DNA of 64,000 nt from Perkinsus chesapeaki ATCC PRA-425 (lineage: Eukaryota; Protista; Perkinsozoa). The notes below the pieces were generated by a model. It saw only the letters and a program-made list of their open reading frames with translations, was not told where the DNA came from and did no database searches. Of this stretch, positions 1-10,240 are shown piece by piece (positions within the stretch are counted from its first letter, which is position 1; each line of letters begins with the position of its first letter). The stretch is taken from positions 1-64,000 of the forward strand of contig JAAPAO010000131.1 of assembly GCA_013115145.1 (NCBI GenBank), given 5' to 3'. The position numbers were made by a program, and so were the translations under genes.

Positions 1-3000
1 CTGGCTCCTGGAACAAGAAGTGATCTTCGCGCATCTGATGTTCTTCCGCGGCTGTCATTCCGCCAGGTTTCTCGGGATAGCTGTCGGATCCGGCAAGTGG
101 ATAATAATCTCCGGCAAGTTCACCAGTCAATGCCTTTAAAGCCTTGGTGAGTACTCGCTCTACCTCGCGCCTCTCATCCTTCGTGCATGAAGGAGGAAGC
201 CTAATGCCTCTAACACTCCTTCCTGTCCTAACTCTAGTGGATATGACATACTTCTCAGTTGGATCAATTGCAGTGTCAAGGAGTTTGCTGTAATCCAAAT
301 CAGTCGGATGTTTGGCATCTGGTGGGTATCCACCGTGGCGCTGGTCGATGACTGGGTCGAAGAGCTCCTTGAAGACCTCGTAACATTCTTCATCACCCGC
401 AACCATTCCGACCGTTTTGATCATTGGATGTCCCTTATTATCCATACCGGTCTTGATACATTTCGCGAGGCCAACTCCATTTGGTGTCTTCTTATCCTTC
501 AAGTTAGCATAGATCTCTGGATTGGCTTTGAGGACATCAGCCATAACACTGTGGTGTTCAGACAGATCAGGCATCTCAGCCGGACATTCATCATGTGGGA
601 ATCCCGGGAATTCGTCGTCGCCTAATCCAGGCATGCTGGAGTAGTCTGCGTGTGCTGGCGTGGAACTCGAGCCGCCTCCAACAAGAGCTTCAAACGCAGC
701 CGCGTCTTCTTTTTGTAGAGCTTGCTCCATCTGGACGATCTTCGAGCATCCCGATATCATAATGTTGACAAGCTCAACTTCAGACTTGCCGATCCTATCA
801 CTGTTTGAAATATCCCAGATACCACCAACACTTGCACTATCCACACCAGCACCGCCGCGAGCTTGCAAATGGAGAGATTTGCAGATGTCCTTGAAATCAG
901 GCCTGGCCGACAGCAGAGGGACCTTCACCATAACTGATGCTCGGAGACCTGTGCCAAGGTTACTCGGACAAGTCAGGACATAACCAAGATGATCATTATG
1001 CATGAAGTCGTAGCCTTCCTGTTTCACCACTTCTTGGACCTTGTTCACTGCCTCGCAGAAGCGAGTGAAGACAGCCTTGATATCAGCGGCCTTCTGCATA
1101 GATATTATTCGCATGTGGTCCTCCTCATTAACCCATACTAGGAAGTTCTTCTGCTCGTTAGCGAATATGCCACGAGCATCGGGCCAGTGTCGGCCCATAC
1201 CAGAGGACAACAATAGAGTTGAGTCTGGCTCCTGGAACAAGAAGTGATCTTCGCGCATCTGATGTTCTTCCGCGGCTGTCATTCCGCCAGGTTTCTCAGG
1301 ATAGCTGTCGGATCCGGCAAGTGGATAATAATCTCCGGCAAGTTCACCACCTAGTGCCTTAAGTGCCTTTGTGAGGACTCTCTCAACCTCTCGCCTCTCC
1401 TCCTTTGTGCACGAAGGAGGAAGTCTAATGCCCCGGACGCTCCTGCCAGTGCGAACTCTGGTAGAAATTACGAACTCACCAGATGGGTCAATCGGGGTGT
1501 CGAGGAGTTTGGTGTAATCCAAGTCGGTTGGATGCTTGGCATCTGGTGGGTACCCACCATGTCGTTGATCGATGACCGGGTCGAAGAGCTCCTTGAAGAC
1601 TTCATAACTTTCTTCATCACCAGCCACCATTCCGACCGTCTTGATCATTGGATGCCCCTTATTGTCCATACCTGTCTTGATGCACTTCGCGAGGCTCACT
1701 CCATTGGGCGTCTTCTTATCTTTAAGGTTCTCATAGACTTCGGGGTGAGCTTTCAGGACATCGGCCATAACACTGTGATGTTCCGACAGATCAGGTATTC
1801 CAGCTGGGCATTCGTCGTGAGGGAACCCTGGGAATTCATCAGCTCCAAGACCAGGCATACTGGAATAATCCATAGTATTCGGAGCAGCAGCGCTACCACT
1901 GCTTCCCCTAAGGGATTCGAAAGCGGCCAGATCAGCACTCTCCAAAGCTTGCTCCATCTGGACTATCTTCGAGCATCCCGATATCATAATGTTGACAAGT
2001 TCAACTTCGGACTTGCCGATCCTATCACTGTTTGAAATATCCCAGATACCACCAACACTTGCACTATCCACACCAGCACCGCCGCGAGCTTGCAAATGGA
2101 GAGATTTGCAGATGTCTTTAAAATCAGGCCTGGCCGACAGCAGAGGGACCTTCACCATAACTGATGCTCGGAGACCTGTGCCAAGGTTACTCGGACAAGT
2201 CAGGACATAACCAAGATGATCATTATGCATGAAGTCGTAGCCTTCCTGTTTCACCACTTCTTGGACCTTGTTCACTGCCTCACAGAAGCGAGTGAAGACA
2301 GCCTTGATATCAGCGCCCTTCTGCATAGATATTATTCGCATGTGGTCCTCCTCATTAACCCATACGAGGAAGTTCTTCTGCTCGTTAGCGAATATGCCAC
2401 GAGCATCGGGCCAGTGCCGGCCCATGCCAGAGGACAACAGCAACGTCGAGTCTGGCTCCTGGAACAAGAAGTGATCTTCGCGCATCTGATGTTCTTCCGC
2501 CGCTGTCATTCCGCCAGGTTTCTCGGGATAGCTCTCGGATCCTGCAAGTGGATAATAATCTCCGGCGAGTTCACCAGTCAATGCCTTTAGAGCCTTGGTG
2601 AGTACTCGCTCTACTTCGCGCCTCTCATCCTTCGTGCATGAAGGAGGAAGTCGAATGCCTCTAACACTCCTTCCTGTCCTAACTCTAGTGGATATTACAT
2701 ACTTCTCAGTTGGATCAATTGCAGTGTCAAGGAGTTTGCTGTAATCCAAATCAGTCGGATGTTTGGCATCTGGTGGGTATCCACCGTGGCGCTGGTCGAT
2801 GACTGGGTCGAAGAGCTCCTTGAAGACCTCGTAACATTCTTCATCACCCGCAACCATTCCGACCGTTTTGATCATTGGATGTCCCTTATTATCCATACCG
2901 GTCTTGATACATTTCGCGAGGCCAACTCCATTTGGTGTCTTCTTATCCTTCAAGTTAGCATAGATCTCTGGATTGGCTTTGAGGACATCAGCCATAACAC

Positions 3001-5527
3001 TGTGGTGTTCAGACAGATCAGGCATCTCAGCCGGACATTCATCATGTGGGAATCCTGGGAATTCGTCGTCGCCTAATCCAGGCATGCTGGAGTAGTCTGC
3101 GTGTGCTGGCGTGGAACTCGAGCCGCCTCCAACAAGAGCTTCAAACGCAGCCGCGTCTTCTTTTTGTAGAGCTTGCTCCATCTGGACGATCTTCGAGCAT
3201 CCCGATATCATAATGTTGACAAGCTCAACTTCAGACTTGCCGATCCTATCACTGTTTGAAATATCCCAGATACCACCAACACTTGCACTATCCACACCAG
3301 CACCGCCGCGAGCTTGCAAATGGAGAGATTTGCAGATGTCTTTGAAATCAGGCCTGGCCGACAGCAGAGGGACCTTCACCATAACTGATGCTCGGAGACC
3401 TGTGCCAAGGTTACTCGGACAAGTCAGGACATAACCAAGATGATCATTATGCATGAAGTCGTAGCCTTCCTGTTTCACCACTTCTTGGACCTTGTTCACT
3501 GCCTCGCAGAAGCGAGTGAAGACAGCCTTGATATCAGCACCCTTCTGCATAGATATTATTCGCATGTGGTCCTCCTCATTAACCCATACGAGGAAGTTCT
3601 TCTGCTCGTTAGCGAATATGCCACGAGCATCGGGCCAGTGTCGGCCCATGCCAGAGGACAACAGCAACGTCGAGTCTGGCTCCTGGAACAAGAAGTGATC
3701 TTCGCGCATCTGATGTTCTTCCGCGGCTGTCATTCCGCCAGGTTTCTCGGGATAGCTGTCGGATCCGGCAAGTGGATAATAATCTCCGGCAAGTTCACCA
3801 CCTAGTGCCTTAAGTGCCTTTGTGAGGACTCTCTCAACCTCTCGCCTCTCCTCCTTTGTGCACGAAGGAGGAAGTCTAATGCCCCGGACGCTCCTGCCAG
3901 TGCGAACTCTGGTAGAAATTACGAACTCACCAGATGGGTCAATCGGGGTGTCGAGGAGTTTGGTGTAATCCAAGTCGGTTGGATGCTTGGCATCTGGTGG
4001 GTACCCGCCATGTCGTTGATCGATGACCGGGTCGAAGAGCTCCTTGAAGACTTCATAACTTTCTTCATCACCAGCGACCATCCCGACCGTCTTGATCATT
4101 GGATGCCCCTTATTGTCCATACCGGTCTTGATGCACTTCGCGAGGCTCACTCCATTGGGCGTCTTCTTATCTTTCAGGTTCTCATAGACTTCGGGGTGAG
4201 CTTTCAGGACGTCGGCCATAACACTGTGATGTTCCGACAGATCAGGTATTCCAGCTGGGCATTCGTCATAAGGGAACCCTGGGAATTCGTCATCTCCAAG
4301 ACCAGGCATACTGGAGTAATCCATAGTAGTCGGAGCAGCAGCGCTACCACTGCTTCCCCTAAGGGATTCGAAAGCGGCCAGATCACCACTCTCCAAAGCT
4401 TGCTCCATCTGGACTATCTTCGAGCATCCCGATATCATGATGTTGACAAGTTCAACTTCGGACTTGCCGATCCTATCACTGTTTGAAATATCCCAGATAC
4501 CACCAACACTTGCACTATCCACACCAGCACCGCCGCGAGCTTGCAAATGGAGAGATTTGCAGATGTCTTTAAAATCAGGCCTGGCCGACAGCAGAGGGAC
4601 CTTTACCATAACTGATGCTCGGAGACCTGTGCCAAGGTTACTCGGACAAGTCAGGACATAACCAAGATGATCATTATGCATGAAGTCGTAGCCTTCCTGT
4701 TTCACCACTTCTTGGACCTTGTTCACTGCCTCACAGAAGCGAGTGAAGACAGCCTTGATATCAGCACCCTTCTGCATAGATATTATTCGCATGTGGTCCT
4801 CCTCATTAACCCATACGAGGAAGTTCTTCTGCTCGTTAGCGAATATGCCACGAGCATCGGGCCAGTGCCGGCCCATGCCAGAGGACAACAGCAACGTCGA
4901 GTCTGGCTCCTGGAACAAGAAGTGATCTTCGCGCATCTGATGTTCTTCCGCCGCTGTCATTCCGCCAGGTTTCTCGGGATAGCTCTCGGATCCTGCAAGT
5001 GGATAATAATCTCCGGCGAGTTCACCAGTCAATGCCTTTAGAGCCTTGGTGAGTACTCGCTCTACTTCGCGCCTCTCATCCTTCGTGCATGAAGGAGGAA
5101 GTCGAATGCCTCTAACACTCCTTCCTGTCCTAACTCTGGTGGATATGACATACTTCTCAGTTGGATCAATTGCAGTGTCAAGGAGTTTGCTGTAATCCAA
5201 ATCAGTCGGATGTTTGGCATCTGGTGGGTATCCACCGTGACGCTGGTCGATGACTGGGTCGAAGAGCTCCTTGAAGACCTCGTAACATTCTTCATCACCC
5301 GCAACCATCCCGACTGTTTTGATCATTGGATGTCCCTTATTATCCATACCGGTCTTGATACATTTCGCGAGGCCAACTCCATTTGGTGTCTTCTTATCCT
5401 TCAAGTTAGCATAGATCTCTGGATTGGATTTGAGGACATCAGCCATAACACTGTGGTGATCAGACAGACCAGGCATCTCACCCGGGCATTCATCATGTGG
5501 GAATCCTGGGAATTCGTCGTCGCCTAA
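1..5527. repeat. Coding tandem repeat with alternating 1224/1227-bp units (higher-order period 2451 bp)
   Basis: The anchor ctggctcctggaacaagaag recurs at 1, 1225, 2452, 3676 and 4903. Spacings are 1224, 1227, 1224 and 1227, all multiples of 3. Confidence 0.97.
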
Positions 5528-6780
5528 TCCGGGCTGTGACGTGTATGCTGTTTCTTCTGCGGGGGTTGCCTCCTTCGCAGCGGAAGGTGCTTCCGCTGTG
5601 GGTTCGCTCTTAGATGGTTCATCTTGTGTACGACTAGCAGATGAGGTATCTAGAAAATCGCGTGCTGTTCAGTTCTTTTACTGTTATTGGCCATGTATCA
5701 AGAAGTGCGTACTTACTCCTCTTTTGGATATACTCTGCCATGAATGACAGAGGATCCGCAGGACGGTCCGTGAGGAGCTGCTGTACCATCCCCTGTAAGA
5801 GCAGTTGGACTTGAAAATCGTCAAGGTACTTCTTAGCGTTTAAAGCTGCCTGATGTCGCGTTTGGCGTTGGGATTTCCTGATGACAGATGTCTGGTCTCG
5901 ATTAACAGTCAGGGGTGTGACAAAATAGTGCCATGGCGGAGTTTATCTCCGTCGCTCGATGACGTCGAGCAGTAAATTACCGATGTCAGGGTTTATAGGC
6001 CAAAACGGAGCGCAAATCTATAAAATTGTCAAAGCCGGGAACGGTACCGTTCCTGACCCACTTCAATTCATTTCCGCCGTCCGTCGACGGCGTCCTCTAC
6101 CAATTGACTCGATTCGGCATCACTTATGCCGTAACAGGATAGCACAAGTAACCAGTGAGGAGACTGAGTTTCGACAAGGTAAGAATATGGCGATAAAGCA
6201 AGTCACCACAATGAGGCTCCTCGGTGTAATTTTATCTATCCACACCGAACGAGCAAGCTGTGGCTGGGCAAAATCACGCGAAGACGCATTTCTCACTTTT
6301 GTTTGACTTGAGGATCTGTATGCTTGAACGTAAGAGATATCTCGATGCTCGGTCCACCGTCTGGGTTCTCCATGGCGATGGATTCCGACTGCTCGCCAAG
6401 GTCTTTGAAATGGTGGAGCGATACTTGTCGACTGCCGACCTGAAGCAGTCGAGCTATCCATACGCAGCATTGTGATCAAATAAGCGAATGCGCTTGGAAT
6501 CCCCTGTGAGCATCGATGAAGGAGCAAAAGGCATGGAGGGATAAGGGGCTGTCTTGGAGAGAAAACGAGAAGGCTCCTACCTGAGTGAACAGGTCGACCT
6601 TGCAAGATTCCTGAGAGTCGGAGGGGAATCGGAAAGGCTCGTTCAAGCGCAGCGGAGCTTGGCGTCTGGTCTCTCCAACTCGGATAGACAGATAGGCTTT
6701 TTCTGAGATAAAGACTGTTTACGATGCAAGGCAGTGGTCTTACCTGGGACATTAGAGGCATCGGTGACGGTGATATCCAT
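1..6780 (-). CDS. Multi-domain phosphagen kinase (ATP:guanido phosphotransferase, creatine-kinase-like) polyprotein with N-terminal beta-rich module and Dpy-30/RIIa-like D/D motif; 3' end runs off the window
   Basis: Manual exon model with consistent phases: 6780-6744, 6702-6581, 6439-6297, 5877-5717, 5649-<1, all introns GT-AG. Repeated domains carry [51 protein letters not shown] and [15 protein letters not shown]. Both linker types were translated without stops. About 2037 aa lie within the window. Confidence 0.93.
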
Positions 6781-7335
6781 GGCTGCTGTCCAGTGGTGCT
6801 ACCTGGGAAAGTAGGTGGACAAGCAAGTGGACGAAAGCGTGTTCGAAAGAACTGAAAGAAAGGCAACAATCACGAAAAGCAGTGAATGAATTTGGGCGGT
6901 AAGCAAGATGTCATAGAGAGGGAAGAGAAAGAGGATGTACGACTACTGGAAGGCACCAAAGGAGATTTCCGGAGACTTCATTTGAATTCTGCGCTGATTA
7001 CGCGCACGCCATTGTAATCGATTTGACGGAGTAGAACAACACAGTTCGCAATGACGTCGAGCAGTATGACGAATGGTTAGTGACCCGCACTATGGTAGAG
7101 TGAGTGCCTTATAGCACTAATAACACCCGGGCATCTTGTTACCTATCTTACAGTGGCATTGGAACAGCTTAGACCCCAAAAGCTTTGGATTTACAATTGC
7201 TGCCGTGTTACATGTCACTATGCCATTGTCACTGTGGTGAGCGGTACCTGGAGAAAGGTTATTTTCAATGGGATTCACGGAGGGATGGAAGGGGCTTCTT
7301 GCACTGTAAATGTGGCTTAGAACTTTTTTACTGTA

Positions 7336-10240
7336 ATGGCTAGCAGCGTCCCCGCAATGAACGGATTCGGGGACTCGGCCTTCAGCTACGATCCAGCTGC
7401 CGCACCACAACTACCCCCTACAGGATCACAACAACAGCAACAACCAGCAACTCAATCTCCATTCCATACCGCTTCTCCGCCAACTCAGAAGGATGGTACC
7501 GCAAATGTAATACTGTGGGCGTCGATACCGAAAATAAATTTTCCTCGTCTTCGTTGGTGACAGGCTCTCGGTTTTGGAGCGCCTGGCAGTGCTGCCATTC
7601 CCGCTGTGTCTGGCAGTGGTGCGGCCTCCGCTGCTCCGGGCAGTGAGAGGGTGAATGATAGCATCTATATTGATTTTGATATTCTCGGGGATGGCAAAAC
7701 AGACCCAAATGAGTAGGAAGACTGCGTTGGGGACACTTGAAGAATCCCTCGCTTGCAGGTTGATGAAAACGCTCAAGGAGCAGCTGTCGAATCCCGAAGC
7801 ACCTATACGTAGGAACGCCTCTGTCTGGGCTTGTGGGGACATTAGTATTGGTAGATAACGGAATGTTTGGGGTGTTCGCGGACAAAGCTCAGCTGGAGGA
7901 TGCTCCCGCTGCTTCCACCAAGGCCGCTGCGCCGGCTGGAAGTGTGACCGGCAACGGTAGTGAGCAATGTGCGGCGATGACGGATCATTATTTAACCATA
8001 GATAATACTGGAGCGAATGACCAGCTTGCGTTGGAGCGTCATTTGGCTGAGCTAGAACTGAACGATGCCAAGGCCCAGCTCGAGGATCTAAAGAAGCAGT
8101 TGTCCGATTCGGGTAGGTGATGACATGCTCTATGTACCGTACCGCTCACGATCAGTATCGGCGCATCAGTCCTCTCTGACGCAGCTGGCAGATGCCAGGA
8201 ATAAACTGGACGATTCAATGGGCCAAGTGGCCAAGCTCGAGGTGCTGTCGGTTCATCGCTGGGAGGATGCTTACACTGTTTTTAGGGTGAACTTAACAGG
8301 GTTAAATCACAGAATAAGACACTTACAACTGACCTTAGTAACGCTAAGGATATGTGGATGAAAGTAGTGCCTAGTGGGACGGGGCATGGGAACGAACGAC
8401 TGCTGCTGTCAGGAATCGAGCCGTGCCTCGAAGCTCCAGGACGAGCTGAACACCAGGGACGATCAAATAGCGGAAGACTCGCGGAGAATGGCGGAGATGT
8501 CGGCAACCAATGAGGTACTGCGGCGGTGGTGGTCTCGACCGGGCCACATGTGGTGGGCAGGCGCTGCAACGTGAAAACGCCCAACTGAAGAAGCTCTTCG
8601 AAGGCTCAGAGCAGGAGGTGGCAGCCCGAGCGAGGGCGGCTGAGAATAGTTTTGGACAGCAAAACGAAAGGTGCTCGACCCGTGGGGGAATTCATACCGA
8701 CTTTTTCTTTGTTAGCTATTTTGGTGGCGCGCGAACAGTACCATCAACATCTAGAGTTCCAGCGGCGATGGCGTCGAGCCTCGGAGAGATGGTGGCTCCA
8801 CCTCAGACTGATGGGTACATGAGACCGCCTACCACCGCAACAACCACTGCATTCACTCCAACGCCTACAGCTCGACTAGGTCAGGGGGATATGGATGTCG
8901 CATGTGATTTGGGTACTTCAGGTGGCACCAGCGGCTCCCCGATGAAGACCACTACCTTCCAGCCTCCCACTACGGGTACTGTCGGTGGCGGTGCTCTCCT
9001 TCCACACAATGTTGGATCACCTGCGACTGTCGAGCGATTCCGGGCTCTTATTGGCGCTCAGGAAGGGGTGCTGTATGAGGATGATATACTACAGGTGATG
9101 ATGCCATACCCCCGGGAGATCTGAGGGAAGTTTGGTATTCAGATTGGAGTACAATCCTCCTACACGTGCGGTATGGGTGAAGGGCAGGTCTCCTTGTACT
9201 TCGGCAACAAGAGTAAGAAGCATCGCTGTGCAACCGCTCGGTAGGGCGCCTCAGGTTCCGGAGCATTGGACGGCTTCGCGGTAGAGCTAATCTCGGGGGA
9301 TGATATCACCCTCACTGCGGAGGAAGCGGTCCCGACGGCTATAAGGGCGAAACAGCAGGTAATGGTGTAGCTAGAGGTGTCAGTGAACTTCCTAGCTTAT
9401 TGTGTAGATACGTCTGTCAATGAAGGTTGTCTGTACTAAACCAACCCAGCAGATTCCTATGATGAGTGTGAGTCATTCTCATGGCTGCTGGCATCGTCCA
9501 CATTACAATCAAATCAGATGCGATTCCTTCTGTTCGATAACACCCCGCGGACCCTATCGCTTCGGTTGCCCATTCTCCTATCCAAGTTTATGACCCCTGT
9601 GGACATCCCTAATGCCGGTGATTTCTTCAGCCTCTGGCGACATCACACGTGAAGAAGCACCTTAGGCAACCAATCTCCTCAGCATCCTTCAGATACCATC
9701 TTTCGGAGCAATCAGCTGTAGTAAGCATCACAGCTTCCTTCGGCTGCAGGGATAGTCTTCTGGCCTTGGCCCGATCCGCCACGTTGGGAGGGGTAATAGT
9801 TCGGCGCGAGGAGGGTTAGGTGGCAAACTTTTTTGTGAAGGTGTTGAAGCTCCATTCCCAGTTGGATGCGAATCCTAACAACCTAGTTTTATGCGGCAAG
9901 TTCCCAGCAGATAGTCCAGAGGGAATACAGTGCTTCACTCTTCCCAATGCAACAGTAGGCCTCAGTGGGGATGATGAAGGTTATGGCTGCCTTCAGGTCC
10001 TAGTGCGGATCGAGGTCGGTACTGGCCCCCAGCATAGCGGCAAGGCCAGAGTTGCGGTAACAGTACCTTAAAAAATCTGAGTCGCCGATACCTGTTTCCC
10101 TTCAGGTCCGGTCGTCCGAGCCCGTTGTTGCGCTGGCTGTAAGAGACGACCTTCTGCTAGCGTTTGCCGAACTACCCGCTGATGCAGAGCCAAGCGACCC
10201 CAACTTTGAGTCTGGTGCCACGGCGGACAGTCGATAGGCT
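7336..10240 (+). CDS. Low-complexity/coiled-coil protein with C-terminal alpha-adaptin appendage (ear) domain, multi-exon
   Basis: Spliced translation FRALIGAQEGVLYEDDILQ|IGVQSSY...GQVSLYFGNKS, then LPILLSKFMTP and LDANPNNLV, resembles AP-2 alpha ear Ig and platform subdomains. The N-terminal part is Ala/Gln/Pro-rich plus heptad-like sequence (LERHLAELELNDAKAQLEDLKKQL). End is approximate. Confidence 0.7.

Follow-up and report, generated by a model that had tools for sequence, protein, structure and literature searches.

In Perkinsus chesapeaki, a phosphagen kinase polymer of the creatine kinase type begins with an N-terminal cassette of 156 residues, encoded by four small exons, in which a module with a predicted C2 fold is followed by a Dpy-30-type D/D domain. 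The same pair of domains is found at the N terminus of various other proteins across the Myzozoa. We consider it probable that the cassette anchors the creatine-kinase polymer through D/D docking, with the axoneme of the flagellated zoospore as the most likely place.

The window analysed here is a stretch of 64,000 nucleotides of the P. chesapeaki ATCC PRA-425 assembly GCA_013115145.1 (contig JAAPAO010000131.1, positions 1 to 64,000). The gene and a conserved block upstream of it are composed as follows, with the corresponding introns of the P. olseni orthologue for comparison.

6972..7037, minus strand: upstream block of 66 nt, 192-257 nt upstream of the ATG; 80% identical by blastn at the matching P. 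olseni position
6744..6780, minus strand: exon 1, with the start codon, the first 12 codons and 1 nt; first beta strand of the C2-like module
6703..6743, minus strand: intron 1, 41 nt, GT..AG (53 nt at the same position in P. olseni)
6581..6702, minus strand: exon 2, 122 nt; C2-like core, including the invariant hairpin S-x-R-x-G-[DE]-x-R-[RK]-Q
6440..6580, minus strand: intron 2, 141 nt, GT..AG (65 nt at the same position in P. olseni)
6297..6439, minus strand: exon 3, 143 nt; second half of the C2-like module (ending near 6314), then the start of a basic linker
5878..6296, minus strand: intron 3, 419 nt, GT..AG; the longest intron of the gene (240 nt in P. olseni, without alignment)
5717..5877, minus strand: exon 4, 161 nt; basic N-terminal helix, then the Dpy-30 D/D motif (Pfam match at about 5721-5837)
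5650..5716, minus strand: intron 4, 67 nt, GT..AG (91 nt at the same position in P. olseni)
5528..5649, minus strand: start of exon 5; flexible tether of about 40 amino acids rich in Ser, Thr, Pro, Glu and Ala, linking the D/D domain to the first kinase unit
1..5527, minus strand: remainder of exon 5; a contiguous series of at least 4.6 phosphagen kinase units of the creatine kinase type

The spliced minus-strand frame opens with the ATG at 6780, continues for 2037 amino acids to the edge of the window and is still open there. A first-pass annotation, made from the letters alone, had proposed four small, phase-consistent exons spliced in frame to a kinase exon that extends downward from 5649. 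This structure was recovered in full: all four introns have GT..AG boundaries, no stop codon interrupts the frame, and the spliced model reproduces exactly the peptides quoted in that annotation.

Comparison with related sequences confirms that the four small exons belong to the kinase gene. A search with the N terminus of the orthologue from P. olseni retrieved the NCBI protein P0277 (“Creatine kinase S-type, mitochondrial, partial”, P. chesapeaki). It aligns with residues 1-328 of the spliced model at 99.4% identity and without gaps; the public annotation therefore uses the same four junctions. The start of exon 1, which is the same in P0277, aligns with residue 1 or 2 of about 35 homologues. 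For exon 2, a six-frame HMM match was obtained with an E-value of 7e-17, together with a blastn match to P. olseni (79% identity) that is confined to the exon. In the P. olseni orthologue itself (KAF4719789.1, locus L001), the small exons are 37, 122, 143 and 161 nt long, as in the window, and the introns measure 53, 65, 240 and 91 nt. The two proteins are 81% identical, and the cassette shows 88% amino-acid identity. Over the 154 codons of the cassette compared between the two species, dN is 0.07 and dS is saturated; the cassette is thus under purifying selection. Among the 120 multi-domain kinases that were found with the kinase part, about 35 begin with the cassette, at residue 1 or 2.

When the window is compared with P. 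olseni by blastn, the exons and the single upstream block align and nothing else does. Around this block (6972-7037) the surrounding non-coding DNA, namely the rest of the upstream region and the introns, fails to align. The block may represent a 5' UTR, a spliced-leader acceptor or a promoter element; an Rfam scan of 5600-7500, which includes it, gave no match. In the region of intron 3 there is also a plus-strand open reading frame of 115 codons (5959-6306), the other introns of the gene being 41-141 nt long.

The kinase exon (window positions 1-5649) is built of near-identical units of about 1225 nt, which alternate between types A and B in a super-repeat of 2451 nt and run off the window. 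The units match the Pfam families ATP-gua_PtransN and ATP-gua_Ptrans, and the best named relative of the kinase part is from Amoebophrya sp. A120 (72% identity). Tandem Repeats Finder reported no repeats in the array, since the kinase unit exceeds the longest period of that program. The tether at the start of the exon evolves fast and differs by insertions and deletions between Perkinsus species, and the parts that flank it are conserved. Public gene models fail on the kinase repeats: P0277 (935 aa), the model for P. chesapeaki, leaves out parts of them, and the partial P. olseni models matching the kinase model, among those listed, lie on contigs of 1-3 kb and end within the first kinase unit. 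The “mitochondrial” label of the public annotation appears to be a best-hit name and was set aside; the N terminus is acidic and would adopt a beta-strand fold, unlike a presequence.

Two relatives of the polymer are informative in other respects. P0100, a cassette-bearing kinase of three domains, carries a canonical Pfam C2 domain (64 bits, residues 1534-1627) between its kinase domains, and this domain has no sequence relationship to the C2-like module at the N terminus. P0022 (eukprot GEMP01001088) is without a cassette and begins Met-Gly-Cys-Gly-Ser-Ser, resembling a dual-acylation motif, as do some related multi-domain kinases. The Met-Gly-Cys start of such cassette-less kinases suggests that anchoring devices are interchangeable in this enzyme family.

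The second half of the cassette, encoded by exon 4, can be securely assigned as a Dpy-30-type D/D domain from its sequence and its predicted structure. The exon 4 peptide matches Pfam Dpy-30 (PF05186) with 30.2 bits (cutoff 22, E-value 3.8e-7) and falls just under the cutoff of the RIIa family (21.2 against 22.4); P0277:1-200 likewise matches Dpy-30, with 28.4 bits (cutoff 22). A profile of 31 members of the D/D family was searched against the PDB and matched FAP385 of the Chlamydomonas radial-spoke neck (E-value 3.9e-9), adenylate kinase 8 (AK8; 1e-6), DPY30 (4e-6) and the D/D domain of RI-alpha (5e-5), followed with weaker values by EFCAB10, NME5 and AK7. The AF2 model of the window's own 53-residue exon 4 peptide (pLDDT 90) consists of three helices (residues 3-20, 23-37 and 42-52). 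Almost all the proteins returned by Foldseek with this model are D/D domains, with weak E-values that reflect a query of only 53 amino acids. The model superimposes on RI-alpha bound to an AKAP helix with a TM-score of 0.73 and an rmsd of 1.0 Å, and on AK7 of the bovine sperm axoneme with a TM-score of 0.81; its identity to DPY30 is 38-44%, and NME5 is likewise among the structures returned. The Dpy-30/RIIa signature that the first-pass annotation had read in this peptide, and for which it had proposed AlphaFold and Foldseek as a check, is thus borne out by the Pfam scores, the PDB profile matches and the predicted fold with its D/D neighbours. D/D domains are obligate homodimers, as established for DPY30 and the PKA R subunits, and the groove formed by the two chains grips an amphipathic helix on a scaffold protein. 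Dpy-30 domains have further roles in the nuclear COMPASS complex and elsewhere.

The first half of the cassette (residues 1-95) is predicted to be a minimal eight-strand C2 sandwich with very short loops, the fold having been modelled on a homologue. The model was derived from a 30-sequence alignment, the first row of which is the homologue P0041:1-95, 45% identical to the module of the window. AF2 gave eight strands for P0041:1-95, with a pLDDT of 81, and C2 domains fill all of the top 50 Foldseek matches of this model. The VIA search, which is independent of Foldseek, gave a Z-score of 11.4 for the same model, with 93-95 of the 95 residues superimposed at an rmsd of 2.2-2.6 Å; 47 chains, almost all of which are C2 domains, reach a Z-score of at least 8, and among the matches are intersectin-2, E-Syt, Munc13, cPLA2 and C2D1 from the ciliary tip of Tetrahymena. 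A structure search of the ESM Atlas likewise gave TM-scores of about 0.8 to C2 proteins.

Searches at the sequence level gave no such name to the module. Residues 1-95 match no Pfam family, whether as the exon peptides or as P0277:1-100, and among the 30 members of the module family none matches the C2 family PF00168, a single one matching C2_GRDP weakly (E-value 0.004). The best E-value in a profile search of the PDB was 0.14, which is no match; hhalign of the module against canonical C2 gave a probability of 0.2%, and a feature search of the ESM Atlas with residues 1-95 returned scores under 0.9 and no name. The N-terminal C2-like module thus represents a domain family outside the coverage of Pfam.

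Examination of the 30-sequence alignment shows six invariant positions (S19, R21, G23, R26, F39 and F52). Position 24, in the hairpin turn, is always Asp or Glu; position 27 holds Arg or Lys in every sequence, position 50 is acidic throughout (Asp in 28 sequences, Glu in the other 2) and position 54 is almost always Lys. The conserved residues are mostly basic, comprising K15, R21, R26, R/K27, K32, R45 and K54. The loop equivalent to Ca2+-binding loop 3 is three residues long, and the alignment contains no conserved Asp cluster of the Ca2+ type. With no such cluster and mostly basic conserved residues, classical Ca2+-dependent lipid binding is not indicated. The first-pass annotation had suggested a C2-like membrane-binding fold for this module; the predicted structure agrees with the fold, and, given the lack of a Pfam C2 match and of a conserved Asp cluster, membrane binding is no more than a possible role of the module.

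The cassette is not peculiar to the kinase polymer. The C2-like HMM, run against 1.84 billion representative proteins, gave 547 matches at an E-value of 1e-3 or below and 91 at 1e-10 or below, and the match nearly always begins at residue 1. In local HMM scans of 133 new C2-like matches, a Dpy-30 motif was found 10-45 residues downstream in 101, and most of the remaining ones are fragments shorter than 140 amino acids. Among the non-fragment matches examined, the C2-like module and Dpy-30 therefore appear to form a near-obligate N-terminal cassette. About a third of its cargoes are phosphagen kinases; the others include an adenylate kinase, SH3/WW proteins, a long array of EF-hands and several protein kinases, of which one comes from Noctiluca. 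For many cassette-bearing matches there is no Pfam domain downstream. The pair occurs twice or more in tandem in P0125, P0149, P0196, P0198, P0218 and P0219, which supports its duplication as one unit. The tandem array of P0125 comprises four matches to the C2-like module and two to Dpy-30.

The named sources of the cassette are all myzozoan: Perkinsus chesapeaki, P. olseni, Chromera velia, Amoebophrya A25 and A120, Noctiluca, Polykrikos, Ansanella, Biecheleria, Breviolum and Symbiodinium. On these matches, the cassette would be a recurrent two-domain unit across the Myzozoa, including Syndiniales and core dinoflagellates. Precomputed Pfam labels mark Dpy-30 on a few such proteins. Our literature searches returned no account of phosphagen kinases with a Dpy-30 domain that always has a C2-fold partner and recurs on many cargoes. 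We tentatively propose that the cassette may act as a portable address label, with Myzozoa as the only group in which it has been seen so far. It would direct a set of enzymes, namely creatine-kinase polymers, adenylate kinase, protein kinases and EF-hand arrays, to one shared scaffold, most likely the axoneme, by an AKAP-like docking independent of PKA. Two contacts would be involved, namely that of the D/D groove with an amphipathic helix and that of a Ca2+-independent C2 domain with tubulin or membrane.

For the kinase polymer, the following arrangement can be proposed. The four exons supply an N-terminal cassette in which the 95-residue C2-fold sandwich, with its basic hairpin, is followed by a basic helix that leads into the D/D domain and then by a flexible linker about 40 residues long. 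Two kinase polypeptides would pair through the D/D domain, and the groove so formed would clamp an amphipathic helix of a scaffold, in the way that RSP3 holds Dpy-30 proteins in radial spokes. In this regard, the AH-D helix of RSP3 binds Dpy-30 proteins, and FAP385 resembles the N terminus of AK8A in the spoke neck (PMC12399478). The C2-like domain may add a second contact, with a membrane lipid, a tubulin surface or another protein. At least about ten catalytic domains on flexible tethers would thereby be fixed at one site, where ATP would be regenerated locally from phosphocreatine, and the axoneme of the flagellated zoospore is the most likely such site. The polymer would then serve as a tethered flagellar phosphagen shuttle, as the first-pass annotation had supposed. 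Tethering as such is well supported, and the evidence for a flagellar location is suggestive. A flagellar site is favoured because the nearest solved D/D relatives are axonemal (FAP385, AK8, AK7 and NME5), because the types of cargo resemble known axonemal D/D proteins, because a creatine kinase is up-regulated in the dinospores of Amoebophrya (PMC6176090), and because the kinase part resembles the three-domain flagellar creatine kinases of animals. Counting against an axonemal site, the E-value of DPY30 lies only about three orders of magnitude behind that of the best axonemal match.

Other readings of the locus were weighed against this one. The cassette could be an artefact of the gene model, in which the exons between 6780 and 6297, or all four small exons, form a separate upstream gene that is not spliced to the kinase. 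Two small sequencing runs bearing the species label placed no reads on 5400-6900, so that the junctions rest on comparative evidence, and the public models could likewise have been predicted without recourse to RNA. Against an artefact, besides the phase-consistent GT..AG introns and the stop-free frame, two other Perkinsus annotations share the exon lengths and the junctions exactly, and “complete” transcriptome open reading frames from Polykrikos kofoidii, Ansanella granifera, MGD/TGD dinoflagellates and MMETSP start with the cassette and continue into kinase domains. A separate upstream gene was rejected on the orthologue and transcriptome evidence, and we hold an artefact to be extremely improbable. 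A further possibility is that the cassette merely pairs two kinase polymers, Dpy-30 taking the place of the classical dimer interface of creatine kinase, with no scaffold involved and the C2-like module acting as a structural cap. Such a role would suit a domain that is an obligate homodimer in DPY30 and the PKA R subunits, and the creatine kinases of Perkinsus marinus are reportedly monomeric, to go by the title of a 2022 article by Fraga, Ellington and Suzuki. Simple pairing would leave the second conserved domain, with its invariant surface hairpin, superfluous; moreover, the cassette occurs on unrelated cargoes without an obvious need to pair, and its strictly N-terminal position and flexible linker are those expected of a targeting module. 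We therefore regard dimerisation alone as rather improbable.

A stronger competitor accepts the anchor and places it outside the flagellum, on a scaffold at the cortex or a membrane, for instance the cytoskeleton of the alveoli or pellicle, the plasma membrane or the surface of an organelle, where the basic patch of the C2-like domain would lie on acidic lipids and the D/D domain would engage a non-axonemal AKAP-like protein. C2 is classically a membrane-binding fold, and the conserved basic residues of the module (K15 to K54, listed above) as well as the diversity of the cargo, with its SH3/WW proteins and protein kinases, are compatible with this placement. The cultured stage of Perkinsus is, moreover, the non-flagellated trophozoite, as is most of the life cycle. 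On the other hand, the nearest solved relatives of the D/D domain are axonemal, and the adenylate kinase, EF-hand and kinase cargoes find their parallels among known axonemal D/D proteins. To our knowledge, all the named taxa with the cassette also possess a flagellated stage. A non-flagellar anchor is thus judged unlikely, and docking in the zoospore axoneme is retained as the preferred reading.

A phosphagen shuttle is most effective with its kinase held at the site of ATP consumption. Such fixation is known to us only for the arginine kinase AK3 of trypanosomes among protists and for the myristoylated sperm creatine kinase among animals. If the proposed anchoring is correct, the Perkinsus gene would represent a third solution, assembled from two folded domains. 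The group concerned includes parasites of oysters and symbionts of corals. Perkinsus is transfectable (PMC9678886), and the cassette provides a testable handle in this genus, which could be used to identify the scaffold and the enzymes that are co-localised on it.

The elements of the proposed arrangement are already known separately, as nucleotide kinases tethered by D/D domains, as multi-domain flagellar creatine kinase and as the N-terminal flagellar targeting of AK3. Like the axonemal D/D nucleotide kinases (AK7, AK8/FAP385, NME5/RSP23 and RSP2, docked on RSP3 and related scaffolds), the Perkinsus protein has a D/D domain on an enzyme of nucleotide energy metabolism. Its cargo is a phosphagen kinase polymer, as opposed to an adenylate or nucleoside-diphosphate kinase, and its D/D domain is of the kind that is always preceded by a C2-fold domain, which is absent from AK7, AK8/FAP385, NME5/RSP23 and RSP2. 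These four proteins reside in the axoneme, for which the Perkinsus protein is a candidate.

The C2-like module shares the eight-strand sandwich of canonical C2 domains (PF00168; synaptotagmin, cPLA2, ferlins and Munc13), with an rmsd of 2.0-2.6 Å over more than 90 of 95 residues. It is smaller than these, however (about 95 residues compared to about 125), and has very short loops, no Pfam match and no conserved Asp cluster. The central-pair protein C2D1 of Tetrahymena, found with a Dpy-30 motif dimer in PDB 9nw3, ties for the top match to the module (Z-score 11.4). At the ciliary tip of Tetrahymena, TLP2 has a helix that is gripped by a Dpy-30 dimer, and next to this dimer the C2 protein sits on the tubulin surface (bioRxiv 10.1101/2024.12.02.626492). 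C2D1 and Dpy-30 are separate proteins there and fused in Perkinsus, and an identity of about 11% points to a shared fold and not to orthology.

As in the Perkinsus polymer, several contiguous kinase domains are joined in one polypeptide in the three-domain creatine kinase of metazoan sperm flagella (sea urchin type), and the kinase part is 50-53% identical to the metazoan three-domain proteins named “creatine kinase, flagellar-like”. The metazoan sperm enzyme is anchored by N-terminal myristoylation. The Perkinsus protein begins Met-Asp-Ile and carries the cassette instead, with at least 4.6 kinase domains compared to three; because its start is Met-Asp, it does not have the Gly2 required for myristoylation. 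The sperm enzyme is described as part of a phosphocreatine shuttle along the flagellum (Tombes et al. 1987, as cited in PMC4517888). In Trypanosoma brucei, the flagellar arginine kinase AK3 is directed by a dedicated N-terminal extension (PMC4517888). The Perkinsus polymer would resemble AK3 in being a phosphagen kinase with a dedicated N-terminal targeting extension, whereas that of AK3 is a calflagin-like basic peptide of about 22 residues with no folded domains, attached to a single kinase domain and unrelated in sequence.
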